A DNA stretch of 64,000 nt from NCBI GenBank assembly GCA_011109175.1, contig RDEW01000037.1, positions 560,760 through 624,759 of the forward strand, given 5' to 3'. This stretch comes from Dicyema japonicum. Taxonomy: Eukaryota; Animalia; Dicyemida. Made by a program: the position numbers and the translations under genes. The notes below the pieces were generated by a model. The model worked only from the letters and a program-made list of their open reading frames with translations, was not told the origin of the DNA and did not search any database. Below, in pieces: positions 3,437-59,800 of the stretch. Numbering within the stretch: position 1 is the first letter of the stretch; each line of letters starts with the position of its first letter.

Positions 3437-3762
3437 TTTTATTTATTTATTAACCCCGGATACACCGAGAAAGAAGTTAAAGTAAACAACTAATTAAGTG
3501 TATCCAGTTTCCACTTCTACAGAAACAGAGTCCATCCGGAATCAGCATAAAGGGTAAGACGTCCATTACATGCAGTTGTGGGAACCTTTCCAGTGGAGTG
3601 GGGGAGAGCAAATGATCCTTTTTCATGCTGGCCTGGCACTGGGCGTCACCTAGACAGGTGGATCACATGACGCCACTCTAATAGGAAGAGAGAAGAGGAA
3701 GAGACAAGCCAACAGAAAACTTCAACCAATTAACCACGCAGCACTACATGGTGCCACGCGGT
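3437..3762 (-). mobile_element. SINE-like non-autonomous retroelement, most complete copy (~325 bp)
   Basis: Homologous to the + strand copies at ~21977, 29299, 36926, 43044, 50756 and 56920. It has a LINE-type 3' hairpin (3456-3465 / 3498-3507) and an A-rich tail. Confidence 0.8.
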
Positions 3763-21976: not shown

Positions 21977-22251
21977 AGATTTATGATTGTTTTGTCTGTT
22001 CCTCCTCTCTCCTTTCCCACTAGAGTGGCGTAATGTAATCAACCTGTATCTGGTTGCACGAAAAAAATCATTTGATCTCCAATACTCAATTGGAGGAGTT
22101 TTCAAAACTGCATGAATATCTTCTACCTTTTATGCTGATTCTGTATGGATTTGTTTGACTTTGAAGGACTCTTTTTCTGTGATAGAGGAAACTGGATACA
22201 CTTAATTAACTGTTTACTTTTTTCTCAGTGTATCTGGGGTTAATAATAATA
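21977..22251 (+). mobile_element. SINE-like element, 5'-truncated (full-headed copies at 36926-37239 and 50756-51061)
   Basis: Matches the 3437-3762 family. Hairpin 22192-22201 / 22228-22237 and TAA tail. Confidence 0.8.
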
Positions 22252-22299
22252 GAAAAAACACTTAAGTAATTATTTTATCCCTACTGACTTGTTAAGTTG

Positions 22300-23965
22300 G
22301 CCACAGGATGGTAATTGCCTAACAAAACATACTATCCAGGACATAAAAAACTACCAAGAATACATTGAGACTCATCTACTGGATGTATCGACGGACGTCT
22401 CACTAAGAGATTCCTGACCTTTATTATCGAAGCATCTGGTGAATACCTTGGCACAAGAGAGAAGTGTAAGACTTACATGATGTCGCTTTACCTAGAGGTC
22501 GAGCTAGCGAGGAACATTAAAGATATATGAAGAAAAAATCAACTGATGATAGTATGAGAAAATCCTCTAAGGTGAAACAGTATATTATAGCGAATATAAA
22601 TAAACTGAACAAGAAACAATTTCCAGATAAATTATTATCTCCATTAAATGAAGTAAGCAAGATAATACATAAATGTACACAGCAATACGCGTGTTTCGAT
22701 AAACTGAAAAGATATTAAGGATGGAATGGGAAATTAATATTGAACCCAGAAGAACAAGTCAATCTTATTGCAGACCATTTCACGAAGATGTTTAATGTGA
22801 ATGCTACATCAATTTCTCCTTTTGATGGATTGCCAATAAACTAAAAACTATAGGATTCCCGGTGTGGGGACATCATCGCCTGTATGATAAAATTACAACC
22901 CTATTAAATGACATGTCTACCACCTGCTCTACACTATATATAGGGATCAGATTATTAATTCCAATACAGTAAATTATTACAGCTAAAGGACCACTTGAAA
23001 ACTTACGCTACTAAACTCCTTACGTAAAGTACTTGAAAATATTGTGATGGAACGAATAAAAGGACTACATGAAAGTCAAAGTGGATTTTGAGAAGAGAGA
23101 TCAACAGCCGATGCGATTTTGAATCACGGATGGAGGCGTGCAACGCATCAAAGATAGAATAACGCCACCAACATTCTGGGGATAGAGTTATCTTTTGACA
23201 CGGTCATTGGCATAAATTAATGGAGGTACTGGAACAATATCTCGATGAGTCAAGCCTGAGACTGATAAGAATTCTACTATCCAGTACTGAGCTCTTTGTG
23301 AAAGTCGGAAAGACCTACTCAAGAATAGTTAACACAAATACATGCACCCCTCAAGGAGACTCTCAATTACTATTTGGAAGGATTCATGAGGGAACTCAGA
23401 TTAATCTATTTAGACATTTCCGAAGACGGAGAGCACTTTTGGGACATAAAAACTCAGTCCCCTTTTATGAAAAAGTGAGGATATTATACGAAGAAAAACC
23501 CTAGCAAATGCGATTATGCATAATAATCTATGGATTAAACGAAAATGGATCAGCATCAAAATATGGATACAGCTGTACAATTCGCTTATAAAACCTATTC
23601 TGCTATACAACACTGGGACCTGGGCTACTTCAAATGAGGAAGTGAGACAGGAGCCGGTGAGAAAAATAACAGGGGAGGTGGACTAGAATCTCATGTAAAT
23701 GAATACAAAAAAATGCGGATCTAAGCCAACAAGCCTGGAGGTAATTGAGTTTCGCTGAAGACTATTTGGCCACATTCTGAGGATGGATTGGCATCCCCGC
23801 CGAACAGAGCTATGGAAGATTACTATTTTGTCAATAGAGTCGTTTCCGTGAAAGGCCTAGAGTAACAGTGTCTTTTGTCCTTCAAAAGGAGCTGAAAAGG
23901 GTTAAAAACTACTCGAATCCGCTGACGACTTTGACTTATTGAGAACCCTAGCAAATAACAAGTGA
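22300..23965 (+). mobile_element. Decayed RTE-like LINE (copies ~37290-39285 and ~51110-53155 keep more of the APE)
   Basis: SDHRMVIA, QSGF*EERST, TPQGDS, LYNSLIKPILLYNTGTW and RLFGHILRM motifs. Confidence 0.88.
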
Positions 23966-28706: not shown

Positions 28707-29183
28707 CTAATTCTGATTGTGTAGTGAGTTAGAATTAAACTCCTCATATGGGAATTGGGGGTAACCTGAAAACGGTGGTTGTAGCATAGTGTCCTGTCCA
28801 AGGAATGGAATCGTCAAGGAATCCAGGTCTGTTGGGTAATTAAAGTGGGATTCGTTAAAGTACGGCATATCTGTGAACAAACTAGGTACTTCAAGGTGAG
28901 GATCAGCAAAAACTTGGAGGATTTGTGCAGTCGAAGTAGATAGGATAGAAGATACTAAAGTTCCCATAAATCACTTACTACCACCATTGTTTAAGAAAGC
29001 CAGGAGACTCTCCAATCTGTACTGGTCATTCGTATTTAATCTAAATTTAATCAAATCTGTACCTCTTTTATAAAATTCTCGGCTATTTCGCCCGCTCCAA
29101 TATGGTGGAGGTACTCGTAGACGTGAGCTGGGAGTCTTCAACTTTACGATTTAACAGTACCTGTCCTTTTCTTGCAATACCAT
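28707..29183 (-). pseudogene. Ssdp: SSDP/SSBP-like LUFS gene, disabled copy 1
   Basis: Same exon layout as copies 2 and 3, but GGA>TGA in exon 3 (29026-29028) and an extra base in an exon-4 homopolymer (~28910). Confidence 0.85.
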
Positions 29184-29298: not shown

Positions 29299-29581
29299 TG
29301 GCGCTATGTGGTGATACGTGACTAATTGGTTGAAGTTTTCTGTTTGTTTTGTCTGTTCCTCTTTCCCTTACCTACTAGAGTGGCGTCATGTGATCAGTGC
29401 CATGTTGGCACAAAAAGGATCATTTGCTCTCCCCACTTATTGGAGGGGTTTTCCACAACTGCAAGTAATGGACGCCTTTTACCTTTTATGATGGTTCGAT
29501 GTGGACTCTGTTTCTGTAGCAGTAAAAACTGGGTACACTTAACTAGTTGTTTATTTGTAACTTACTTCTCGGTGTATCCGG
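29299..29581 (+). mobile_element. SINE-like element ~115 bp upstream of, and divergent to, the Ssdp ATG (copies 43044-43330 and 56920-57208)
   Basis: Matches the 3437-3762 family. Lacks the A-rich tail. Confidence 0.8.
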
Positions 29582-35323: not shown

Positions 35324-36013
35324 CTTTAGATAATAAAGCATTTACTCCATCGAAGAATTATTCCTAGTAAGTATGTGAATGTGTAACCATATACTTCAGT
35401 CATTGGAACACGTCGAGATCTTTGGAAGACTTCGTAACACATGGACAAAATCAAAAAAATATTTGTCAAAACAGGAAATTTTCAAATGAAATTTATATAA
35501 GTTCAAGTACCCTCCAGCTGAAAAAAGATTTGTTCCTCTTATCAACTCTAACCTATTAATGTTGATGCATATGTTATCACCCCATTCATTATCCTGGGAA
35601 TAACTGGAATAAATTCAGTAATTATTTTTATAAATATTAAGTTTTAGATAATTCAAGTAATGCTGAGTACAGAGCAAATGGAAGACAAAGATAATTGTTG
35701 GACTCCAATTGAGAATTCACGTAATTCGTTTTTAAATAATTATTTGTTTTCGACTCCGAAAGGTCCACAATATTATGATTTTTTGTGGGTGATAAAGTAT
35801 GCATAAACATTAATAAAAAAGACTTTGGAACAAATCTTTTGTTGTGTCTAGATAAGTTCCATCCATCTCCAGGAATAATTAATATTTATCGAATAATCGA
35901 GTTGAGGTGGTTCTAGTATGTTAAATTAATATATAAAATTCCAAGGGGAAATATGGACTGTGGGAATGACAAGACTTAAGAATAGCTAAAATTATCATCG
36001 AACCTTCAACAGA

Positions 36014-36760
36014 AATGTACAGCAACGGGATTCTAACTACGCCGCTTGCCCGGCACTCGTTACACTGTGTCATACGGCCAGTAATGGACTATAACTAGAT
36101 AATTAAGACTAGAAGTGCAAGCGAGACGGGAGGAAATCTCGATAAAGATAAAGGACATCAAATCGCTAGAATGAAGCAGGAATATATGAGTATGGAGAGA
36201 ATAAAGGAGGATTCGTCAGAGACGATGGAACTTTTAGACAAAGAAAGAAAAGAGAAAACGGAAAATGCGATACAATTGATTAAAAAGCAGGAAGAATATG
36301 ACGGACTGTCTGAGAAGATTGTTTTAGAAGTTAATAATTTTAAGAATCAATCTGTAAAAGTGGGTTTATATAACAGATCAAAAAGAACGCTGATCTAACA
36401 GTAAAATGTCACAGAAAGGCGACGAATTACTGAGAAAATATAAATTTATCGAAAGAACAAGGAAACAAGTCGAGTTGTACAAGCAGGACTTAAAGAACAT
36501 GAAACCAGTTTGTTTGGCTAACAAATTCAGTTGGACACTAGCACACCAGTTAGTAAAATTGGTTCGACTGTGTCACGCCAATCGAACAAAAGAAAGAACC
36601 CTATTTCTACGGAAAAAAGGATCACTAAGACGAATAAGAGCGAGACAGAGATATATTCCCATTATATGTTAGATGGTGTGATTTATTGAAGGACGAGGAC
36701 GAAGATGGATTAGATTTTTTGAATTTGGGACCGGCAAGTAATTTAAAAATTGCAGTATAA
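36014..36760 (+). pseudogene. Frameshifted, intronless K/E-rich coiled-coil ORF in the junction segment (second copy ~49851-50588)
   Basis: Consecutive same-strand ORFs MKQEYMSMERIKED.., MSQKGDELLRKY.. and ..FPLYVRWCDLLKDEDEDGLD... Origin unknown. Confidence 0.4.
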
Positions 36761-39700
36761 TAGTCGCTATATTTAGAAAACTAATAAGCAGGTCACAAAG
36801 AATAAGAAATTTAAACTAAGACCAAGGGAAAAATATTTCTTTGACTAATCTAGTTTTGGTTTATATTTTAAATAAAGACACATTTATTATATATTTTTAT
36901 TTTACTTATTATAAAAACAAGATAAAGCCGTGTGGTGCCATGTGTCTACTCGATTGAAGATTTATGATTGTTTTGTCTGTTCCCCTCTCTCCTTTCCACT
37001 AGAGTGGCGTAATGTAATCCACCTGTATCTGTGGTGCCAGGGTGTCACGAAAAAAATCATTTGATATCCAACACTTAACTGGAGGAGTTTCAAAACTGCA
37101 ATGGATGTCTTCTACTTTTTATGCTGATTCTGCATGGATTTGTTTGACTTTGAAGGACTTTTTTCTGTGATAGAGAAAACTGGATACACTTAATTAACTG
37201 TTTACTTCTTTCTCAGTGTATCTGGGGTTATTTATAATAGAAAAAAGCAAAAGTAATTATTTTATCCTACTGACTTGTTAAGTTGGCTCTCACGATCGCT
37301 ATTGAGAGTAACTCAATATGCGGAGGTCATAATGTATTATATTAGTTTGTTAAACGAAATAGAAAATATAATGAGTTGTTTTATGGGAATCATGGACGTG
37401 GGAAAAAAACTTATCTGGAACTATACTAAGCTATTCCTACGTCGAAAATAATTTTTTCACGTGTAATGCTGCATTCATGTATCCTGCCTGTCACAAAACT
37501 ACATGAATGGAAAGTGGAGAAATTCAGGTGGGAAGCTGGTTCTTATATAGAACTAGTTTGACTATGTTATGTGTCGGATTAAACACAAAAACTCTCAAAC
37601 TCAAGTTCGTACGAGGTTCGACAACCGTCAGTGACCACAGGATGGTAATTGCTTAACAAAACATACTATCCAGAACATCAAAAAGCTACCAAGAATACAT
37701 TGAGACTCATCTACTGGATGTATCGACGGACGTCTCACTAAGAGATTCCTGACCTTTATTACCTTGGCACAAGAGAGAAGTGTAAGACTTACATGATGTC
37801 GCTTTACCTAGAGGTCGCTGAGCTAGACAGGAACATTAAAGATATATGCAAGAAAAAATCAACTGATGATATATGAGAAAATCCTCTAAGGTGAGACAGC
37901 ACATTATAACGAATATAAATAAACTGAACAAGAAACAAGTTCCAGATAAATTATTATCTCATTAAATGAAGTAATCAAGATAATACATAAATGTACACAG
38001 CAATACGAGTGTTTCGATAAACTGAAAAGATATTAAGGATGGAATGGGAAATTAATATTAAACCCAGAAGAACAAGTCAATCTTATTGCAGACCATTTCA
38101 CGAAGATGTTTAATGTGAATGCTACATCAATTTCTCTTTTTGATGGATTGCCAATAAACTAAAAACTATAGGAGTCCTGGTGTGAGGGCATCATCGCCTG
38201 TATGATAAAACTACAACCCTATTAAATGACATGTCTACCACCTGCTCTACTCTATCTATAGGGATCAGATTATTAATTCCAATACAGTAAATTATTACAG
38301 CTAAAGGACCACTTGAAAATTTACGCTACTAAACTCTTTACGTAAAGTATTTGAAAATATTGTGATGGAACGAATAAAAGGACTACATGAAAGTCAAAGT
38401 GGATTCTGAGAAGGGAGATTAACAGCCGATGCGATTTTGAATCATGGATGGAGGCGTGCAACGCATCAAAGATAGAATAACGCCACTAACATTCTGGGGA
38501 TAGAGTTATCTTTTGACACGGTCATTGGCATAAATTAATGGGGGTACTGGAACAATATCTCGATGAGTCAAGCCTGAGACTGATAAGAATTCTACTATCC
38601 AGTACTGAGCTCTTTGTGAAAGTCGGAAAGGCCTACTCAAGAATAGTTAACACAAATACATGCACCCCTCAAGGAGACTCTCAATTACTATTTGGAAGGA
38701 GCTATGAGGAAACTCAGATTAATCTATTTAGACAAGACATTTCCGAAGACGGAGCGCATTCTTGGGACATAAAAACTCAGTCCCCTTTTATGAAAAAGTG
38801 AGATATTATACGAAGAAAAACCCTAGCAAATGCGGTTATGCATAATAATCTATGGATTAAACGAAAATGATCAGCATCAAAATATGGATACAGCTATACA
38901 ATTCGCTTATAAAACCTATTCTGCTATACAACACTAGGACCTGGGCTACTTCAAATGAGGAAGTGAGACAGGAGCCGGTGAGAAAAATAACAGGGGTGGT
39001 GGACCAGAATCTCATGTAAATGAATATAAAAAAATGCGGATCTAAGCCAACAAGCCTGGAAGTAATTGAGTTTCGCTGAAGACTATTTGGCCACATTCTG
39101 AGGATGGATTTGCATCCCCGCCGAACAGAGCTATGGAAAATTACTATTTTGTCAATAGAGTCGTTTCCGTGAAAGGCCTAGAGTAACAGTGTCTTTTGTC
39201 CTTCAAAAGGAGCTGAAAAGGGCTAAAAACTACTCGAATCCGCCGACGACTTTGACTTATTGAGAACCTTAGCAAATAACAAGTGAGCTTGTTTGGTTTG
39301 CGTACCGATATGGTGAATTATTTTTCCCCATTATCTCCCCTATTGTTCACGTTATGATGGATGACTTGCCACTCCCTTAGGGGGACGATGACTTACTATT
39401 AACGTATGCTGATGATATATTCATTGCCTCGAGGGATGTGAGTATTGTGGAAGCAACGAGAAGAATACAAGACAATATGAATTATGGCTTTGGGAAAATC
39501 AATTGACTGCTAGCCCAGAGAAGTCGGTTGTCAACCTTATTCACGACAAACAGAAGACTAGGGAAAGTATCAATTGACGTCAAATTGGATGGGAAGATTA
39601 TACCCCAAAAATACCAGAAAATCATGGGAGTCACCTTTGACACCTTAACCTTTACAAAACATGTCGGAAATATGTTAATGATTTGTACGAGGAAAATCAA

Positions 39701-42451
39701 CTTCCTGAAAGCGTTCTTGGGAGACCAAAGAGACATAAAAGATCTGAGTGGTCTGGATGTCATATACAAACAGTTCATCGAGGCTACAATAGGATACGCA
39801 TGTAATATCCGGGGATCTAACCTTTCTTCAAGGAATTTGGACAAGACATCCAACATTCAAGTGAAGCCAGCAAACCTACTAAGGAAATATTCGGAGTGGA
39901 AATCTAGCCTAGAAACCTAGAAATTATGATAGAGGCGAGTGGAACAGTGCCCCTACAAAGGACTCGGGTATGCGGACCCCGTCCATTTCGAAAATGCGCA
40001 GGAACTCAGTCGGAACACCGAGAAAAGATACGAAGACTGCTAAGGGAGGCTGGGATCACCTGAATTTGGTTTTTTGGATATGAAGGTTGTTTTTTGGTTT
40101 AATAAAATAAAATTATTTTTCCATAATTCGGGAACGACATTCGTAACCGACTTGATATGTCTACTGAAAATTATCTTCCTCCTTATTTACCTTGGACAAA
40201 TAACCGTGGATATATTTATCAACCAGACAAAATTACCTTCCACGAAAAAACTGAAAATCTTGGGATCACCTTCAACACACACATGCCCTTTTCATCTCAT
40301 GTAGACGGCATCCTCGGAAGCTGCTCAAGAAAGCTAGGGATAATCAAATCTATTTTTGGTGGCACTAAAACCCCTTTTCCAGCATTGAAGTTATTGTACA
40401 ACAATTCATTGAGCCATCTGTCAGCTATGCCTGTGTGTCATGGGAATCAATCTGTCCTGGACGAACAAACATAAAATCAGCGACATTCAGTCCTTAATAG
40501 CCACTAATATTAGTATTTTTGGGAACTAAAAAATTAATCCACCCATCACTTGAATACCTTATCCGACAAAATGGAAAGGGATTTGTTTCCCTGTGCATGA
40601 ACTACAACTACCAAATTACACAGCCATGACGTGTCTTATGAAAAAGATATACATCACCCCGCTCCAATTTCTATTCCCAAATCATCCCACAGGGAAGCCG
40701 CGTTGGATCCAAAAGGCGTACAAGAGAGGATGAGAAATCAGATTGAGCGATATTTTGTTGGCTTCGCGAGATCAGGACATTTAGAAGGCCACAGAAAGAT
40801 TACAAATTAACCTGGATAGGCTTAATGCCTGAATACCTCTGACAAAAGATTGGGAAGGAAGACAGTCACCGTGAAGTTAAACAAGGTCGGCATCCCTTTC
40901 AACAGATGTCAAAAGATCTTGGGAGTGACAATTGATATGCATTTCTCTTTGACACCACACGTAGAAAACATTCTATTGAAATGCGAGAAGAAACTGAACG
41001 TATTGAAAAGTTTTTCGAGAATATGGAAGAGTGGTACTCACCCGGTCTTGATGAACGTGTACAAACAGTACATCGAGCCATGTTTCTCAGATGCATGCGC
41101 CTCGTGGGGACCGTCCATATCTTGGACAAATATGAGGAAAATTGAGGAACTGCAAAAGACGGTTTACGGAGTAACGGAGCGTTGGATTTGTGATCATCGA
41201 ACCGGACCTACGCCTCTGGAGGCCCTTATGAGACTAGACTCCAGATCACGGGAAGGTGGACCCGAAAATTCAGGCAGTCGTCCTGTACGTTCATGCGCGG
41301 CACGAAGTAAGAACACCGGGCAAAGATGAGGTCTCTGTTAGAATGCATCGGGATCACGTGATAATTAATTTGTTTTTACCGTGGTTTTGGTTAAATAAAA
41401 AAAACTAATAATTTACAAGGTGAGGGATTATCGATTATCACCATATATGTGTAGCTGCTCACAGATGATTCCTCGTACTCTTCCAATTTTTGGCCGCACA
41501 GGATTATTAAGAGCATCCAACGCTCACTTCCTTTGTTTAGAACTTAAGGTTTCCGATTTCTCCTGAGTCGATTGCTCGTCCATGCTCACGAGAATGAAAA
41601 CATGGGGTTTCATCCGTCATGAAGGGAAGTTGATATCTCGTGCGATAGAGGTACGCCACCTCAATCCTCCGACCAATTAACCAATTGGTTTAAATAACTT
41701 TAACCCCTGGTTAATTAAAGAAACAAACCAACGATAAAACCACGTGACATATCCTCCCAAATCTCATATTTTTACCAATAATATCAAAAAAATATTTAAA
41801 GGGATTGAATAGAAAAAATATAATGTAAGTGGAAGATTCCCGCGAACGATGCTTGGTATTAAAATTTTAGCCACCCAGTTATGGCTGTGGCCCTCTAACT
41901 TCAATTTTTTGTTTTAGCTGATAAACGTACCAAATGTAATAATATTATGTGACCTATTGAATATAATCTGAATATTAATGCAAAATATAAAAGATGACTA
42001 ATAATCAGTTTTAATTATTTTAAAGGTCTCATAGTTTCAAGCTTGAGACTAGGTAGTCTGTCATTCTAGATAAATGGTGGAGATGGAAAACGTCCGGATG
42101 AAATGACCATATTTCCGTTTGGTGCTGGGAAGTCCCTAGACTGGACGTTATGTGTAGGAAAATTTTACTTCTAACATCTTCCCTCAGATTGCTAACAATG
42201 CTTGTTCAATCGCTGGAAAGGCCGAGACATTGAAGCGTCTGACCGGTGAGTTTCCCCGGATGGTCTCTGATCTCTTCAATTAGGGTTTCTTAGAGAGCTT
42301 TACTAATAACAATCTAACAACATCCACTTTTGTTTCAGGGAAATTAGTGACATCAGCATCCACAAATGCAAATATCCAAAAATAATTATTCCATTTTATC
42401 AACCAAAAATTAAATTTAAGTGAAGCAAATAACAGAAATCAATATTTAAAA

Positions 42452-42927
42452 CTAATTCTGATTGTGTAGTGAGTTAGAATTAAACTCATCATATGGGAAT
42501 TGGGGGTAACCTGAAAACGGTGGTTGTAGCATAGTGTCCTGCCCAAGGAATGGAATCGTGAAGGAATCCAGGTCTGTTGGGTAATTAAAGTGGGATTCGT
42601 TAAAGTACGGCATATCTGTGAACAAACTAGGTACTTCAAGGTGAGGATCAGCAAAACTTGGAGGATTTGTGCAGTCGAAGTAGATAGGATAGAAGATACT
42701 AAAGTTCCCATAAATCACTTACTCCCACCATTGTTTAAGAAAGCCAGGAGACTCTCCAACCTGTACTGGTCCTTCGTATTTAATCTAAATTTAATCAAAT
42801 CTGTACCTCTTTTATAAAATTCTCGGCTATTTCGCCCGCTCCAATATGGTGAAGGTACTCGTAGACGTGAGCTGGGAGTCTTCAACTTTACGATTTAACA
42901 GTACCTGTCCTTTTCTTGCAATACCAT
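42452..42927 (-). CDS. Ssdp: Miniature SSDP/SSBP2-3-4-like LUFS (LisH) domain protein, ~134 aa, copy 2
   Basis: Exons 42927-42905, 42879-42807, 42784-42723 and 42698-42452; GT-AG introns of 25, 22 and 24 nt. Spliced protein MVLQEKDRLPAHVYEYLHHIGAGEIAENFIKEIKYEGPVQVGESPGFLKQWWDIFYPIY... aligns without gaps to SSBP [54 protein letters not shown]. Confidence 0.92.
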
Positions 42928-45900
42928 TTTAGTTTTAATGTTTTCACATTTTATTCCTATTTCGGTTCGAAGTGAAATTTATAAAAAATAATATTTTATT
43001 AATATATAATTAATTTAAACCTTTTGGATTTTATATCTCTCCTTGGCGCTATGTGGTGCTACGTGACTAATTGGTTGAAGTTTTCTGTTTGTTTTGTCTG
43101 TTCCTCCTCTTTCCCTTACCTACTAGAGTGGCGTCATGTGATCAGTGCCATATTGGCACAAAAAAGGATCATTTGCTCTCCCCAACTCCATTGGAGGGGT
43201 TTCCACAACTGCAAGTAATGGACGTCTTTTACCTTTTATGATGGTTCGGGGTGGACTCTGTTTCTGTAGCAGTAAAAACTGGGTACACTTAACTAGTTGT
43301 TTATTTAACTTACTTCTCGGTGTATCCGGACGAACAAAACACAAGACTGTGTGCTTTTTTTATGGGAGGAACCAACATCCCCAGTTGTCCCACACATAGT
43401 CCGAACAAGGAAGTAGAAGTGCTCTGTCTCGAGATAACTGTTCGTTTCATGTTAATTTAAGTTGGAACCTGCGAAGTTTTCAAGGCACTTTCTCCGAGTT
43501 GACCGCTAAACCAACTCTCGTCGCCTACAATATTTGTTGTGCAAGCATCCCCTACGGCCTTACAACCTACGCCCAGTCTCTCCCTTAGCCGGAGTGCGTC
43601 CCCTGATAGCATCAAAAGATGAAGTACTCCTCCCAATACGGACTTTTGCCCTAGTATCAGAGCAGGGCTCAACGGAATCAGACCGGACCATCTGAAAGAC
43701 TTAACTTCTTTGTCTCTATGAGATTCAGGACTTCGTTTCACGAATTTAACTACCTCATTTATGAACCCTAAGTTGTCAACCACTTTTTGCTTTCCTCAAA
43801 CTTGATACCCTGCGATTAGAATGACGGCGGTGTACGACCAGTCGCGGTCGGGTTTGACTGCAGAAGGCTGGCTGCCAAGATTGCCTCCCAATATTCTATA
43901 ACTGATTCATTTTCCAGAAACTATTATGTAAAAGATCGTACCCCTTAGAGTTAGGATGTCTGGCACACTGTTCATCTCAAGCGAGTTTCTACCTGGGCAA
44001 CGAGAATACAGAGAATGCACAAGTAGGGAAGAACATCTACTAAGATGAGGAGACTACTGAGAGGCCATATTGCCTATTAGCCTCGTCCCCTTTTATTTAA
44101 ATGGTGGTGAATTCTGTTCTTGAGTCTGCCCCAGTTTTTAAATATTATCTAACTTTATGTACGTGCTATCCCAAAATAGATGACAGTGATTATTGGTATC
44201 AAAGCAATGTTAGAGTTGATCCACCATGGGTCGATTTCCAAGAAGGGGCCAAGAATCAATAATTAGATAGCAGTGTTTTATCATCAACTTGATTATTGTA
44301 AGCCTTGGTTAGAAAATATCGATAATTCAATTTGCATAATTATTCAAAAATAACTGAAGGGTGAATCAAATCAAAGTAACACTAAATTAGTGAATCTTGG
44401 TTGAGGTGTGGCGTGTCTCTTGCACAAGATGTCTTCTTCATGCATTCAATCTTCCCTGTTCACTATTGGATGATCTGATGGCGGATGCGAGAAACAGGGA
44501 AGGATGGAAATGACTTACAGCGCGTGTCCAGAGATGCATGGCAAAAGTGGAATCTCAAATTAGTTAACTTTTCTGTTTCATTGCTATTAATAATAAATTA
44601 GTGAATTTTCTCTCAAAGTATCATCTTATAATTGCTTTTGGTTGAATGGTTGACACTTTTCTAGTCTTTAACGTACTCTCAGTTTGTCTACTATACAGTT
44701 GGATGTTAGAAACTAGTAGAAAGGATAGTTGGGAGAGGATAAACCAAAACCCTATGTATTCGCATGTTCATGGGAAACGTGGGAGTGCCTTTAACTAGAG
44801 GAGAGTTCTAGCTCGTATTTGACTTTTTGCTGTGTAATTTATTGTACCTTCGACTTGCATTTTCAGTTTGGCGTTTTGGTATCGTTCTCCAAGATCATCT
44901 TCATCTCCATTTTCCTAATTTGAACTCCCGAAACTGCCAATGTGCTCAGTTGCTTGTTTTCTTAAATTCTTCAATTTCTTTGTTTAATGTCTGAAATTCC
45001 TTTTCTGACAGATTATTTGCCTTTTCTCCACTTTGATTTGATTGAAAGGTACATTATTCAGTTTTATTGTGCATTCAATATTTTAATTTCGAAAGCCAAT
45101 TTTCAATACTTTACATTAGTCGCGAGCCCAAGTCTACACTGAGCCGAGGATGATACTTTGACAGCTTTCAGCATAACTGTCATTTTAACTAAAACTTAAT
45201 CAATAACTTTATTTTATTTTTACATATAAAGATTATGACCTAATGGCCTATAGCAGGATTTTTGTCAAAGATAATGAAGAGTACCGACTTCTAAAATCAA
45301 TCCTTGAAGTTCAAAACGTAAATACTTCTAAAGTTAAAAAGTACTGCCTAAAAAAACGAAAATTTTATTATTATTGACGGAAAGCTTTATCTCAAAGTTG
45401 TTGACTTTGAGGAATTGAAAGATACATTATTCGTAAGTGGTAAATTACTACAATGTTTGCCACTACGCAGTGCCACTGAAACAATATTACGATTTGAGTC
45501 GTATTGTTGCAGATTTATCTAATTAGAGATTTCTAGTTGATCTGATTGATCCTAAAGCTATAGGTTAGGTTATTTTTGTAGATTTGAAAATCAAAATGAT
45601 CAGTTTTCTTGGTCGTTGTCAGTTACAGACGTCTATTAAGAATATTGATTTACGAGAAACCTAGAAAATAATCGTGGAATTCAGGTGGCCAACAAATTAG
45701 AAGAATAAATCTCTCACTCATCCACAAATAAATTGCTGCTTTTATTTTTAGGTGTTTGTCCGTTTCAGATATATAGAGGGATTCCGGGGTTCAATACTAT
45801 CGTGGAAAATACTATTGAAGTAACGGAGGCAGACGGTCAAGACAACCCCTAAACATTTACTAAGGGTTTTTTGCCTTTAATTTTACAAAAGATGATTTCA

Positions 45901-46980
45901 AATTTAATTTTCCAAGGGTCGATCTGAATCTCCTTATTATAAAAGAATGAATAGGAAGATGGGAGTGCAGAATGAATGGGAAGAATGTCCGTACCATTAA
46001 CTTCTTAAAGAATTCTGTGACGTTTTACCAAGAGCGTTTATACTACAAAAACAGTGATTCCATATCAGGATTAGGTCGTGGAAGGAAATAGGCTCCACTG
46101 TGAGACGCTGTGTAGACGTTATAAATCGCAAATCCTTAATGAGAAGATCCTTGCTATAAGAAATAAATTGATGCTTTATTCGAAGGAGGATTGAGGAGGA
46201 AAAGGTGGATAAAGGAATTTTACCTTTCAGAAATTTCCACAAAAACATTATGCATGGAGAGACTGAATCTGACATATTGTGCTGGAAACCATAGTAGAGG
46301 ATTTTTTACGCAAAAAGCATCAACTGTTCTCCACCACCTGTTGAACCTTGTGAACACCTACCGGACATAATTACAAGAACTTGATCACAGATATGTCTTA
46401 AGTAGGACTGACAAATTGAACAGGATACATTCCTCCGTGACAGAATGCAGATATGATGAGCTCGGAGTTTTTCATATAAAAATAAAATTGTATAAGAGGA
46501 CTTATAAACCTCTTTAAGGCTCTCATAGATAGAACTATTACCTTAACCACTTTAGTTGACAAATCTCTGTCCTAAAATATATAAATTTCTAGTTGAGTCA
46601 GTCTCACCCTTAAACGATTGTTGAATTTCTCTCAGAATAACTTTTTTACTATAAAGCTAATATTTTAAGACTCCACGTGTCTGGTCAGTATTAAAAGACT
46701 TTATGTTTCTTTGTGTCTGAGATTGTTCTCTGGTGCTGTTCTTAGTGACTTGTTAACTAGGAGAGCTGATGATTAGGGGGTCACGAATTTCCTTGTATTC
46801 TTTCTGTCCTGATAGGAAAATAAAGGCTTAGATGAGCTTGCCTGTGATTCATTTAAGGGACCACGTGACACATTTAATCAATGAACACTCCATTCGGGAA
46901 TTTTAACAAAATGATTTAAATCGTTCCTTATGGGGATGGCATTGTTAAAAAAAGTTGTCTTAGCAGCGATGACTTTAGAT

Positions 46981-49158
46981 CAGGGATTCTCAACGGCGCC
47001 CCAGCGGGCCGCATGCGGCCCCCACGATTTTGGTGCGGACGCTTAAAATTATTAAAAAAATATTACATATTTTACATAATACAGCCGGATTTTAACTGTG
47101 CTTTTTCTTTCTGTTTGTTTCGTACAATAAACTTTTTATGGTTAAAAAATTTTTACATATTTTAACTATTGTTTTTAAATTAAATATTTTTTGTATTAAC
47201 TTTTAATTAATATTGCTTGTGATGTCTGGAAAACGTGTTAAAAGAAGTAGAAAAATTATTCAAGAAAATCGTGCAATTAACCCCGAATGGGAGGAACAAT
47301 TTATCGTTTTTAAGAAAATGGCAAAGCACATTGCCTGATTTGTCATTTTGTTATTCGATGTCTTAAGTTATATTATGTCGAGAGGCATTATATGAAACAT
47401 TCTTCAGAATATGATTCATTTCGAGGTGAATCAAGAAAAATCAAATTTCTATCTATGAAATCAAATCGCAAACTACAAACCACTTTGTTCAAACAGCCCA
47501 TGCATCAAGATCCGCTACAATAGCTTTTTCAAAATTTGTCATCTACTTGCAAAAAATATGAAGCCGTATTCAGATGGAGAATTTATTAAGCAAGCTATCC
47601 TTATATTTACTGAAAAATGTTGTTTTCAGAAATTAAAAAAATGTTATAAACTTACAGCTAAGCAACGATACAGTTACTCGGAGAATTGAGAGAATATCTG
47701 ACGATATTCAATGCCAGCTACTCACTGAATCCTACTTTTTCGTACACTATTCTATTGCTCTTGACATCACTAAAGATATTAGTGATACAAAACAATTGGC
47801 TGTGTTTATTCGAGATGTCATGCCTGACTTCAAAATTTATGAAAATTTTCTCACGCTACGTAACTTTCATGCTTCTACTAAAGGAGCTGATATATTCCGT
47901 GAATTTCGTGATTGCCTTGAAAGGCACATTTGGATCTTTCAAAAATGTTTTCAATTGCCACAGATGGATGTCCTTTTATGGTTGGATGGAAAACGGGTTT
48001 CAAGGTCTCGTAGCTGGATGGCGAGTAGATGATGAATTGAGTCCTGTGATTTGGCAACACTGCATACTACATCAAGAAAATTTAGCTGTAAATCTATGAA
48101 AATGGACCATGTAACAGAAACGGTCATTTCAATCGTAAATTTATTCGCTCTCGTGCTTTAAAATCACCGCAATTTTAGGTAATTTCTCGAGGATGTTGAT
48201 GCTGAGTATAGAGATTTGCTCATGCATACAACCGTACGATGGTTGAGTCGGGCAGCATGTCTGAAAAGGTTGTATAAATTTTAAATAAATCGCATTTAGA
48301 TTTTATGACCTTCTCCCGGAGATTATAAATTTTATTGACAATAAGATATTCTATCTTTAGCTTACTGATAAGGAGTGGATTGCGGATTTTAGCATTTATG
48401 GTTGATATTTTTACACACCTTTCGATTTTGAATACTTCTCTGCAGGGTAAGAACAAACTATGTCATGAATTATACGGACTTGTTTCTGCATTTATCGAAA
48501 AACTACACCTTTTCAAAATACAAATTGCAAGTAGAGTTACCATTCATTTTCCAATACTTTCAAACCACAGGGTAGATGGATCATATGAAAAATATACCTC
48601 TGTTATTAGTGACTTAATCGATGAATTCGAAACACGTTTTAATGATTTTAAAGAAGCTCTACCTATTATGAAAATATTTTCGTCACCTATGGAAACAGAT
48701 GCTGCAACCCGCTCCATATGTATATCATTTGGAGCTAATTGAAATGCAGGCAGATTTACAACTTACCGCGCTATTTAAGTCAAGTGAACTATTGGATTTT
48801 TAAAGTCGAATTCCACAATGGAAATATCCAAACTTGGTCGATAATGCTCAAAAAATGCATCAGTCTTCGGATCAACGTATGCATGTGAAGCTCTTTTCAG
48901 TAAACTTACGCGAATAAAAAGTAAGTATCGAAATCGATTGACTGATGAACACTAATTCAACTTTTACGTACATCGTCTTCGAACTTTACTCCTCGTTTCG
49001 ATAAAATAGTAGGCCAAGCAAAATCAAGTCTCACATTGATTCTCTTATTACGTAGTAAAGCCTTTTTTTTTAATCAAATAAAATATTTTTTGTGCGGCCC
49101 GCAAAGATACTCTTAATTATCGTTTTGGCCCTTGAGCTAAAAAGGTTGAGAACCCCTG
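46981..49158 (+). mobile_element. Buster hAT, copy 2
   Basis: Same TIRs, TSD and flanks as copy 1. Intron at 48269-48299. Confidence 0.97.
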
Positions 49159-52100
49159 CTTTAGATAATAAAGCATTTACTCCATCGAAGAATTTATTCC
49201 TCAGTAAGTATGTGAATGTGTAACCATATACTTCAGTCATTGGAGACACGTCGAGATCTTTGGAAGACTTCGTAACACATGGACAAAATCAAAAAAATAT
49301 TTGTCAAAACAGGAAATTTTCAAATGAAATTTATATAAGTTCAAGTACCCTCCAGCTGAAAAAAGATTTGTTCCTCTTTCAACTCTAACCTATTAATGTT
49401 GATGCATATGTTATCACCCCATTCATTATCCTGGGAATAACTGGAATAAATTCAGTAATTATTTTTATAAATATTAAGTTTGATAATTCAAGTAATGCTG
49501 AGTACAGAGCAAATGGAAGACAAAGATAATTGTTGGACTCCCAATTGAGAATTCACGTAATTCGTTTTTAAATAATTATTTGTTTTCGACTCCGAAAGGT
49601 CCACAATATTATGATTTTTTGTGGGTGATAAAGTATGCATAAACATTAATAAAAAAGACTTTGGAACAAATCTTTTGTTGTGTCTAGATAAGTTCCATCC
49701 ATCTCCAGGAATAATTAATATTTATCGAATAATCGAGTTGAGGTGGTTCTAGTATGTTAAATTAATATATAAAATTCCAAGGGGAAATATGGACTGTGGG
49801 AATGACAAGACTTAAGAATAGCTAAAATTATCATGGAACCTTCAACAGAAATGTACAGCAACGGGATTCTAACTAGGCCGCTTACCCGGCACTCGTTACA
49901 CTGCGTTATACGGCCAGCAATGGACTATAACTAGATAATTAAGACTAGAAGTGCAAGCGAGACGGGAGGGAATCTCGATAAAGATAAAGGACATCAAATC
50001 GCTAGAATGAAGCAAGAATATATGAGTATGGAGAGAATAAAGGAGGATTCGTCAGAGACGATGGAACTTTTAGACAAAGAAAGGAGAAAACGGAAAATGC
50101 GATAAAATTGATTAAAACGCAGGAAGAATATGACGGACTGTCTGAGAAGATTGCTTTAGAAGTTAATAATTTTAAGAATCAATCTGTAAAAGTGGGTTTA
50201 TATAACAGATCAAAAAAAACTCTAACAGTAAAATATCACAGAAAGACGACGAATTACTGAGAAAAGATAAATTTATCGAAAGAACAAAGAAACAAGTCGA
50301 GTTGTACAAGCAGGACTTAAAGAACATGAAACCAGTTTGTTTGGCTAACAAATTCAGTTGGACACTAGCACACCAGTTAGTAAAATTGGTTCGACTGTGT
50401 CACGCCAATCGAACAAAAGAAAGAATCCTATTTCTACGGAAAAAAGGACCACTAAGAAGAATAAGAGCGAGGACAGAGATATATTCCCATTATATGTTAG
50501 ATGGTGTGATTTATTGAAGGACGAGGACGAAGATGGATTAGATCTTCTGAATTTGGGACCGGCAAGTAATTTAAAAGTTGCAGTATAATAGTCGCTATAT
50601 TTAGAAAACTAATAAGCAGGTCACAAAGAATAAGAAATTTAAACTAAGACCAAGGGAAAAATATTTCTTTGACTAATCTAGTTTTGTTTATATTTTGTAA
50701 ATAAAGACATATTTATTATATATTTTTATTTTACTTATTATAAAAACAAGATAAAGCCGTGTGGTGCCATGTGTCTACTCGATTGAAGATTTATGATTTT
50801 TGTGTCTGTTACTCCTCTCTCCTTTCCCACTAGAGTGGCGTAATGTAATCAACCTGTATCTGGTAGCACGAAAAAAATCATTTGATATCCAACACTCAAT
50901 TGGAGGAGTTTCTAAAACTGCATGAATGTCTTCTACCTTTTATGCTGATTCTGTATGGATTTGTTTGACTTTGAAGGACTCTTTTTCTGTGATAGAAGAA
51001 ACTGGATACACTTAATTAACTGTTTACTTTTTTCTCAGTGTATCTGGAGTTAATAATAATAGAAAAAAACTAAAGTAATTATTTTATCCTACTAACTTGT
51101 TAAGTTGGCCCTCACGATCGCTATAGAGAGTACCTGAATATGCGGAGGTCATAATTTATTATATTAGTTTGTTGAACGAAATAGAAAATATAATGAAGTT
51201 TTTTATGGGGAATCATGGACGTGGGAAAAAAACTTATCTGGAACTATACTAAGCTATTTGTACGTCGAAAATAATCTTTTCTCATGTGTAATACTGCATT
51301 CATGTATCCTGCCTGTCACAAAACTACATTGAAGGGAAAGTGGAGAAATTCAGGTGGGAAGCTGGTTTTTATATAGAACTAGATTGACTATGTTATGTGC
51401 CGGATTAAACACAAACACTCTCAAACTCAAGTTCGTAATAGGTTCGACAACCGTTAGTGACCACAGGATGGTAATTGCCTAACAAAACATACTATCCAGG
51501 ACATCAAAAAACTACCAAGAATACATTGAGACTCATCTACTGGATGTATCGACGAACGTCTCAGTAAGAGATTCCTGACCTTTATTATCGAAGCATCGAA
51601 GCATCTGGTACGAAGCATCGAAGCATCTGGTGACTTGGCACAAGAGAGAAGTGTAAGACTTACATGATGTCGCTTTACCTAGAGGTCGCTGAGCTAGCGA
51701 GGAACATTAAAGATATATGCAAGAAAAAATCAACTGATGATAGTATGAGAAAATCCTCTAAGGTGAGACAGCATATTATAGCGAATATAAATAAACTGAA
51801 CAAGAAACAAGTTCCAGATAAATTATTATCTCATTAAATGAAGTAATCAAGATAATACATAAATGTACACAGCAATACGAGTGTTTCGATAAACTGAAAA
51901 GATATTAAGGATGGAATGGGAAATTAATATTGAACCCAGAAGAACAAGTCAATCTTATTGCAGACCATTTCACGAAGATGTTTAATGTGAATGCTACATC
52001 AATTTCTCCTTTTGATGGATTGCCAATAAACTAAAAACTATAGGAGTCCTGGTGTGAGGGCATCATCGCCTGTATGATAAAACTACAACCCTATTAAATG

Positions 52101-56324: not shown

Positions 56325-56800
56325 CTAATTCTGATTGTGTAGTGAGTTAGAATTAAACTCATCATATGGGAATTGGGGGTAACCTGAAAACGGTGGTTGT
56401 AGCATAGTGTCCTGCCCAAGGAATGGAATCGTGAAGGAATCCAGGTCTGTTGGGTAATTAAAGTGGGATTCGTTAAAGTACGGCATATCTGTGAACAAAC
56501 TAGGTACTTCAAGGTGAGGATCAGCAAAACTTGGAGGATTTGTGCAGTCGAAGTAGATAGGATAGAAGATACTAAAGTTCCCATAAATCACTTACTCCCA
56601 CCATTGTTTAAGAAAGCCAGGAGACTCTCCAATCTGTACTGGTCCTTCGTATTTAATCTAAATTTAATCAAATCTGTACCTCTTTTATAAAATTCTCGGC
56701 TATTTCGCCCGCTCCAATATGGTGGAGGTACTCGTAGACGTGAGCTGGGAGTCTTCAACTTTACGATTTAACAGTACCTGTCCTTTTCTTGCAATACCAT
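56325..56800 (-). CDS. Ssdp: Miniature SSDP/SSBP-like LUFS protein, ~134 aa, copy 3
   Basis: Exons 56800-56778, 56752-56680, 56657-56596 and 56571-56325. Frame intact, with a V>I difference from copy 2 in exon 3. Confidence 0.92.
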
Positions 56801-59800
56801 TTTAGTTTTAATGTTTTCACATTTTATTCCTATTTCGGTTCGAAGTGAAATTTATAAAAAAAATAATATTTTATTAATATATAATTAATTTAAATCCTTT
56901 TAGATTTTATACCGACCCTTGGCGCTATGTGGTGCTACGTGACTAATTGATTGAAGTTTTCTGTTTGTTTTGTCTGTTCCTCCTCTTTCCCTTACCTACT
57001 AGAGTGGCGTCATGTGATCAGTGCCATATTGGCACAAAAAAGGATCATTTGCTCTCCCCAACTCCATTGGAGGGGTTTCCACAACTGCAAGTAATGGACG
57101 TCTTTTACCTTTTATGATGGTTCGATGTAGACTCTCTTTCTGTAGCAGCAAAAACTGGGTACACTTAACTAGTTGTTTATTTGTAACTTACTTCTCGGTG
57201 TATCCGGGCGAACAAAACACAAGACTGTGTGCTTTTTTTATGGGAGGAACCAACATCCCTAGTTGTCCCACACATAGTCCGAACAAGGAAGTAGAAGTGC
57301 TCTGTCTCGAGATAACTGTTCGTTTCATGTTAATTTAAGTTGGAACCTGCGAAGTTTTCAAGGCACTTTCTTCGAGTTGACCGCTAAACCAACTCTCGTC
57401 GCCTACAATATTTGTTGTGCAAGCATCCCCTACGGCCTTACAACCTACGCCCAGTCTCTCCCTTAGCCGGAGTGCGTCCCCTGATAGCATCAAAAGATGA
57501 AGTACTCCTCCCAATACGGACTTTTGCCCTAGTATCAGAGCAGGGCTCAACGGAATCAGACCGGACCATCTGAAAGACTTAACTTCTTTGTCTCTATGAG
57601 ATTCAGGACTTCGTTTCACGAATTTAACTACCTCATTTATGAACCCTAAGTTGTCAACCATTTTTTGCTTTCCTCAAACTTGACACCCTGCGATTAGAAT
57701 GACGGCGGTGTACGACCAGTTGCGGTCGGGTTTGACTTCAGAAGGCTGACTGCCAAGATTGCCTACCAATATTCTATAACTGATTCATTTTCAAGAAACT
57801 ATTATGTAAAAGATCGTACCCCTTGAGTTAGGATGTCTGGCACACTGTTCATCTCAGGCGAGTTTCTACCTGGGCAACGAGAATACAGAGAATGCACAAG
57901 TAGGGAAGAACATCTACTAAGATGAGGAGACTACTGAGAGGCCATATTGCCTATTAGCCTCGTCCCCTTTTAATTAAATGGTGGTGAATTTTGTTCTTGA
58001 GTCTGCCCCAGTTTTTAAGTATTATCTAACTTTATGTACGTGCTATCCCAAAATAGATGACAGTGATTATTGGTATCAAAGCAATGTTAGAGTCGATCCA
58101 CCATGGGTCGATTTCCAAGAAGGGGCCAAGAATCAGTAATTAGATAGCAGTGTTTTATCATCAACTTGATTATTGTAAGCCTTGGTTAGAAAATATCGAT
58201 AATTCAATTTGCATAATTATTCAAAAATAACTGAAGGGTGAATCAAATCAAAGTAACACTAAATTAGTGAATCTTGGTTGAGGTGTGGCGTGTCTCTTGC
58301 ACAAGATGTCTTCTTCATGCATTCAATCTTCCCTGTTCACTATTGGATGATCTGATGGCGTATGCGAGAAACAGGGAAGGATGGAAATGACTTACAGCGC
58401 GTGTTCAGAGATGCATGGCAAAAGTGGAATCTCAAATTAGATAACTTTTCTGTTTCATTGCTATTAATAATAAATTAGTGAATTTTCTCTCAAAGTATCA
58501 TCTTATAATTGCTTTTGGTTGAATGGTTGACACTTTTCTAGTCTTTAACGTACTCTCAGTTTGTCTACTATACAGTTGGATGTTAGAAACTAGTAGAAAG
58601 GATAGTTGGGAGAGGATAAACCGAAACCCTAAGTATTCGTATGTTCATGGGAAACGTGAGAGTGCTTTTAACTAGAGGAGAGTTCTAGCTCGTATTTGAC
58701 TTTTTGCTGTGTAATTTATTGTACCTTCGACTTGCATTTTCAGTTTGGCGTTATGGTATCGTTCTCCAAGATCATCTTCATCTCCATTTTCCTAATTTGA
58801 ACTCCCGAAACTGCCAATGTGCTCAGTTGCTCGTTTTCTTAAATTCTTCAATTTCTTTGTTTAATGTCTGAAATTCTTTTCTGACAGATTCTTTGCCTTT
58901 TCTCCACATTGATTTGATTGACAGGTACATTATTCAGTTTTATTATGCATTCAATATTTTAATTTCGAAAGCCAATTTTCAATACTTTACATTAGTCGCG
59001 AGCCCAAGTCGACACCGAGCCGAGGATGATACTTTGACAGCTTTCAGCATAACTGTCATTCGAACTAAAACTTAATCAATAACTTTATTTTATTTTTACA
59101 TATAAAGATTATGACCTAATGGCCTATAGCAGGATTTTTGTCAAAGATAATGAAGAGTACCGACTTCTAAAATCAATCCTTGAAGATCAAAACGTAAATA
59201 CTTTTAAAGTTAAAAACTACTGCTTAAAAAAACGAAAATTTTATTATTATTGACGGAAAGCTTTATCTCAAAGTTGTTGACTTTGAGGAATTGAAAGATA
59301 CATTATTCGTAAGTGATAAATTACTACAATGTTTGCCACTACGCAGTGCCACTGAACAATATGACGATTTGAGTCGTATTGTTGCAGATTTATCTAATTA
59401 GAGATTTCTAGTTGATCTGATTGATCCTAAAGCTATAGGTTAGGTTATTTTTGTAGATTTGAAAATCAAAATGATCAGTTTTCTTGGTCGTTGTCAGTTA
59501 TAGACGTCTATTAAGAATATTGATTTACGAGAAACCTAGAAAATAATCGTGGAATTCAGGTGGCCAACAAATTAGAAGAATAAACCTCTCACTCATCCAC
59601 AAATAAATTGCTGCTTTTATTTTTAGGTGTTTGTCCGTTTCAGAAATATAGAGGGATTCCGGGGTTCAATACTATCGTGGAAAATACTATTGAAGTAACG
59701 GAGGCAGACGGTCAAGACAACCCCTAAACATTTACTAAGGGTTTTTTGCCTTTAATTTTACAAAAGATGATTTCAAATTTAATTTTCCAAGGGTCGATCT

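Follow-up and report, generated by a model that had tools for sequence, protein, structure and literature searches.

The window, by which we mean the whole 64-kb stretch of Dicyema japonicum DNA that was analysed, contains at 42.4 kb a shortened additional copy of the gene for SSDP, read from the minus strand. SSDP is an enhancer cofactor, and Dicyema is a parasite of the octopus kidney. The gene is divided into four exons by three very short introns:

42927-42905, minus strand: exon 1, 23 nt; start codon and 7 codons, very short N-terminus
42904-42880, minus strand: intron 1, 25 nt, GT-AG, phase 2
42879-42807, minus strand: exon 2, 73 nt; LisH helices alpha1-alpha2 of the LUFS domain
42806-42785, minus strand: intron 2, 22 nt, GT-AG, phase 0; ends set by the adjoining PDB matches
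42784-42723, minus strand: exon 3, 62 nt; loop, then the beginning of alpha3 (PGFL..WW)
42722-42699, minus strand: intron 3, 24 nt, GT-AG, phase 2; in-frame stop if retained
42698-42452, minus strand: exon 4, 247 nt, ending in TAG; end of alpha3, then a 75-aa tail rich in proline, aromatic and acidic residues

The coding parts add up to 405 nt (134 aa and the stop codon). The ATG of exon 1 is the only one in the open frame, as it also is in a paralog on C90. Two of the three inserts would shift the frame if retained. The introns are poorer in GC than the exons (30% vs 42%), all three start with GTA, and adenines stand immediately 5′ of the acceptor. We infer that the introns are removed by the ordinary spliceosome. 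An extra intron in exon 4 that would carry the frame beyond the stop codon was sought, and no candidate does so. Four read runs covering 42100-43300 were genomic-DNA-like: the introns were covered and no joint fell within the gene, a pattern that has no bearing on expression.

Homology searches were run exon by exon, each exon serving as a separate query. Exon 2 matched four PDB chains, all of them SSDP/SSBP2 (E 0.02-0.05, best E 0.02), and aligned with residues 15-36 of 6iwv. Exon 3 also matched four chains, again exclusively SSDP/SSBP2 (E 0.02-0.05), and aligned with residues 37-56 of the same structure; the two exons therefore adjoin without a gap. Helix alpha3 is carried on by the first codons of exon 4. 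Pfam searches with the single exons of the window gene gave no match, including LisH and SSDP, and the LisH family was weakly matched by an exon of the paralog on C223 (E 0.012). The chance of finding both GT and AG at ends fixed by homology is about 0.003 per intron. Two independent in-register matches, combined with GT and AG at these ends, leave little doubt that the sequence represents an SSDP/LUFS gene. The original prediction had proposed such a gene, with three GT-AG introns (25 nt in phase 2, 22 nt in phase 0 and 24 nt in phase 2), internal exons of 73 and 62 nt, and a LUFS/LisH domain that becomes gap-free upon intron removal. The intron and exon coordinates were confirmed from the sequence, and the adjoining, exclusively SSDP/SSBP2 matches bear out both the continuous domain and the family assignment.

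In Dicyema C135 and in L044, an SSDP gene of an outgroup animal, a conserved post-alpha3 stretch is encoded by an exon 4 of 85 nt; the window gene has the 247-nt terminal exon instead. The long Pro/Gly/Met region (PF04503) gave no Pfam match on this exon, whose 75-aa tail contains 2 Gly and 2 Met. Searches of the genome with PF04503 and PF17916 were blank, and the controls were equally blank, which makes these searches uninformative.

A partner for the LUFS domain is encoded in the same genome. The Ldb gene on C246 (710 kb) matches the DD-LCCD part of LDB1 (E 5e-15) and keeps both methionines of alpha6, the SSDP-binding helix. A second, more divergent Ldb-like gene lies on C323 (1596 kb), and both have long stop-free frames across the LIM_bind domain. 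A possible LID follows a 21-nt intron in the C246 gene; it is suggestive, with no Pfam or PDB match. The same gene contains single-N joins with duplicated blocks, which look like assembly artefacts. In Drosophila numbering, V65, F66, D68, L69 and Y70 of alpha3, together with F58, take part in Ldb/Pygo binding, and the D68R substitution lowers the binding of Chip (PMC6800368). At F58/V65/F66/D68/L69/Y70 the window gene reads F/I/F/P/I/Y, with W67 replaced by tyrosine and P55 by serine. Having F58, I65, F66, I69 and Y70, it therefore keeps the hydrophobic face.

The 75-aa tail contains 10 acidic residues (D/E), no basic residue (K/R), 20 F/W/Y/L and 11 Pro. Relatives of exon 4 outside the genome were not found by homologue search, in a representative library or in the ESM Atlas; a match in the representative library to an unrelated repeat protein was rejected as repeat-inflated. 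Selection was assessed mainly against C90, an older, intact paralog with 81% DNA identity to the window gene. In exons 2 and 3 this comparison gave pS 0.26, pN 0.08 and dN/dS 0.28 (Fisher p=0.01), and against the paralog on C323 synonymous sites were saturated, with pN of about 0.15. These substitution patterns indicate that the LUFS exons are under purifying selection. For the tail, dN/dS against C90 was 0.77, which is not different from 1. The single indel in this region is in-frame and the stop codon is in the same place; freedom from stops has p=0.15 under neutrality. These values give no clear sign of constraint on the acidic-aromatic tail.

The weak constraint on the tail would suit a dominant-negative or decoy protein, which would dimerise with canonical SSDP or occupy Ldb and, having no working activation region, damp the output of ChiLS. 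The loss of the conserved extension and of the Pro/Gly/Met tail, the proline in alpha3 and the coexistence of a canonical SSDP (C135) point in the same direction. We nevertheless consider a decoy improbable. The tail is both acidic and aromatic, a composition typical of activation regions. Moreover, a tethered LUFS-only fragment of SSBP3 loops and activates like the full-length protein (10.1101/2025.06.05.658047), so shortness alone does not make an SSDP a decoy.

The gene is part of a tandem array, with three copies of a 13.85-kb unit in the window and one of the SSDP copies broken:

36003-49838, no strand assigned: 13.85-kb tandem repeat unit; the gene lies among decayed transposon-like pieces, and the copies are 96.8-97.7% alike
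56325-56800, minus strand: second tandem SSDP copy, intact; one synonymous change and one V-to-I change
28707-29183, minus strand: third tandem SSDP copy, broken by a TGA (exon 3) and a 1-nt insertion (exon 4)

The 1-nt insertion of the 28.7-kb copy is also present in an Illumina contig, and some alleles of the broken copies were found in the reads. The 42.4-kb copy has alleles of its own at 42852 and 42760. In addition to the three copies of the window there are two near-identical SSDP loci, an intact one on C312 and a broken one on C89. C312 shares the upstream flank of the window; its stretch at 1.91-1.93 Mb comprises one copy of the unit and about 5.5 kb of this flank, at 93-95% identity. 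C89 is a 21-kb scaffold that consists largely of the repeat unit. Given the continuity of the C312 flank and the make-up of C89, either may be an allele; the C312 stretch is either a duplicate segment of older date or an allele in which the unit is repeated fewer times.

The surroundings of the gene are repetitive. The segments 47400-49000 and 38500-41330, with the matching places of the other units, look by eye like decayed remains of a hAT transposase and of the end of a LINE reverse transcriptase; Pfam searches with these pieces gave no match. At 43044-43329, beginning about 115 nt 5′ of the ATG, lies a very high-copy short repeat. The same repeat is found at 3437-3762, 21977-22302, 29299-29581, 36931-37287, 50787-51110 and 56920-57208; summed over contigs, its depth exceeds that of the gene by a factor of hundreds to thousands.

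In this setting the window copies might be silent passengers: duplicates of recent date, derived from a once-functional short gene and carried along in a transposon-rich unit, with another copy (C90 or C312, for example) supplying the function. Two of the five near-identical copies are broken, the remainder of the unit looks like decayed elements, and the selection signal comes from the older split with C90, which is no proof of present use of the window copy. We regard this reading, too, as unlikely: at 42.4 kb the splice sites and the frame are intact, the 60 nt upstream are conserved with C90, and the 42.4-kb, 56.3-kb and C312 copies are separated by few changes, which are conservative.

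Invertebrates usually have one SSDP gene. The Dicyema genome contains at least 12 SSDP-like loci, several of which differ from the window gene downstream of the LUFS domain. Three of them (C323:954 kb, C323:923 kb and C57:771 kb) have a different tail, which is N/Y/Q/S-rich, includes a hydrophobic stretch and the tripeptide NPF, and is basic at its end. Of these three, only C323:954 kb (L007 1435-2140) is intact as assembled; a homologue search with its exon 4 gave no match. C35 is a degenerate paralog. Sister copies broken as assembled are the 28.7-kb window copy, C89, C57, C35 and the second C323 copy. C223 (about 945.3-944.3 kb, minus strand) is a longer SSDP present in one copy, and its Pro/Met/Gly tail is split by multiple introns. 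It has several 1-nt frame breaks, which reflect error or decay, and about 90 nt upstream of its start lies the end of a non-LTR retroelement whose open frames are long. C135 (about 429.4-428.6 kb, minus strand) has a canonical SSDP N-terminus and an 85-nt exon 4 but lacks intron 2; its introns measure 22, 25 and 20 nt. The modelled part, from the start to exon 5, is free of frame breaks, and C135 is probably the conventional SSDP of Dicyema japonicum. Exon 3 of the window gene is identical to that of C223 in 14 of 20 residues, and derived alpha3 residues are common to the window gene, C90 and C323. These comparisons indicate that the window gene is a derived, multicopy short paralog and not the sole SSDP.

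The original prediction had spoken of an SSDP cut to about 134 aa with a short tail. Length and tail proved right; the protein belongs to a derived multicopy paralog, which coexists with the canonical C135 and the longer C223. That the window gene is the single Dicyema ortholog, miniaturised by genome reduction, is largely refuted. In its favour, C223 may be dead, given its frame breaks and the nearby retroelement; the reading is very hard to reconcile with at least 12 loci and with C135, which has the canonical N-terminus, the 85-nt exon 4 and an unbroken frame from the start to exon 5.

The intron positions were compared with an outgroup animal. A profile search with exon 2 led to an ENA contig with a gene call of 82 aa, and examination of its DNA revealed a canonical SSDP gene (L044). 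It has introns where the window gene has them, at all three sites and in the same phases. Exons 2, 3 and 4 of L044 are 73, 65 and 85 nt long, and its introns 1, 2 and 3 are 134, 101 and 95 nt. Since the two genes share the three sites, the phases and a 73-nt exon 2, the positions in the LUFS region (phases 2, 0 and 2) are, by this comparison, ancestral animal positions, as had been supposed. Vertebrate SSBP2/3 genes probably have introns at the same three positions; exon sizes of vertebrate SSDP genes were not found in the literature search. Within Dicyema, the same junctions recur in divergent paralogs despite differing intron sequences and lengths: 22-28 nt at the site of intron 1, with intron 2 lost in C135. 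That the introns are not real, the locus being a decayed gene in which small insertions are bounded by GT and AG by chance, might be argued from the two inserts that shift the frame, and it hardly deserves credence given the positions and phases shared with L044, the GT-AG ends kept across paralogs with different intron sequences, the purifying selection on the exons and sizes that are the norm of the species.

This norm is on record. In 2007 dicyemid introns were found to average 26 nt and to sit at conserved positions (Aruga 2007, PMC2222250), and Ogino 2010 is cited for dicyemid ultra-short introns in PMC6543705. In Dicyema sp. the median intron length is 27 nt, with two thirds of the introns below 30 nt (PMC6543705); for the D. 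japonicum assembly of 67.5 Mb in 377 scaffolds a mean of 38 nt is given (PMC6736024). Dicyemids are treated as one of two cases of short introns among animals, with signals reduced to GTA and AG (Hadjez 2026, PMC13644364). Introns of 22-25 nt are the genome-wide norm of Dicyema japonicum and already published. As introns of about 26 nt at conserved positions were described for dicyemids between 2007 and 2010, the micro-introns of the window are not new. Genes with micro-introns escape ORF tracks and default aligner settings, and their relevance here is mainly one of annotation.

Taken together, we think it fairly probable that this short SSDP/SSBP paralog is lineage-specific, spliced and functional, and that it works as a variant ChiLS subunit. 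The micro-introns would be removed by the ordinary U2 spliceosome, as most dicyemid introns are. The 134-aa product is predicted to dimerise through LisH and to dock by alpha3 on the LCCD helix of Dicyema Ldb, and these two predicted contacts would make it a variant subunit of ChiLS, an enhancer complex. The new 75-aa tail stands in place of both the conserved post-alpha3 extension and the long Pro/Gly/Met region, and it may function as a compact activation region. The short clade may have arisen from an SSDP lineage of the C223 type, with copies being born and lost as segments of transposon-rich DNA are duplicated.

More tentatively, the loci may record an expansion. In a parasite of 30 cells that has lost most developmental regulators, the ChiLS scaffold would have multiplied into at least three deep SSDP lineages, including LUFS-only mini-SSDPs with swapped tails (acidic-aromatic, or N/Y/Q-rich on C323), and these, together with two divergent Ldbs, might form stage-specific enhancer complexes. 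We see this broader picture as possible and, on balance, doubtful. Nothing on dicyemid Ssdp was found in the literature search; nor was an SSDP expansion with swapped tails, and the multiplication of short copies looks unreported. The paralogs would form a natural series of truncations, in which the LUFS core is kept by selection and at least two replacements of the tail have taken place. Such a series bears on the need for the long C-terminus of SSDP, and on the regulation of the remaining LIM-homeobox genes in a very simplified animal; there are 4-9 of these per dicyemid (PMC6543705).

Compared with known systems, the introns of the window gene are typical dicyemid ultra-short spliceosomal introns in length (22-25 nt), in their GTA...AG ends with adenines by the acceptor and in their conserved positions, and no difference was found; in myxobolid myxozoans the intron median is as short as 22 nt. 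With the SSDP/SSBP family (Drosophila Ssdp, vertebrate SSBP2/3/4; PDB 6s9r, 6iwv, 6tyd, 8hib) the gene shares LisH and alpha3 (LUFS), the ancestral intron sites, the 73-nt exon 2 and the hydrophobic positions of the Ldb-binding face. It differs from the family in the size of the product (134 aa), in a first exon of seven codons, in lacking the 85-nt exon 4 with the conserved post-alpha3 extension as well as the Pro/Gly/Met tail (PF04503 unmatched), and in W67Y and D68P. The small Dicyema genome has at least 12 SSDP-like loci, whereas mammals have three genes (10.1101/2025.06.05.658047). Both subunits of the ChiLS complex (Chip/LDB-SSDP; PMC6800368, PMC10287724) are encoded in Dicyema, and the C246 Ldb keeps the two alpha6 methionines. 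In contrast to ChiLS as described, two divergent Ldb-like genes and several types of SSDP could give mixed complexes in Dicyema.
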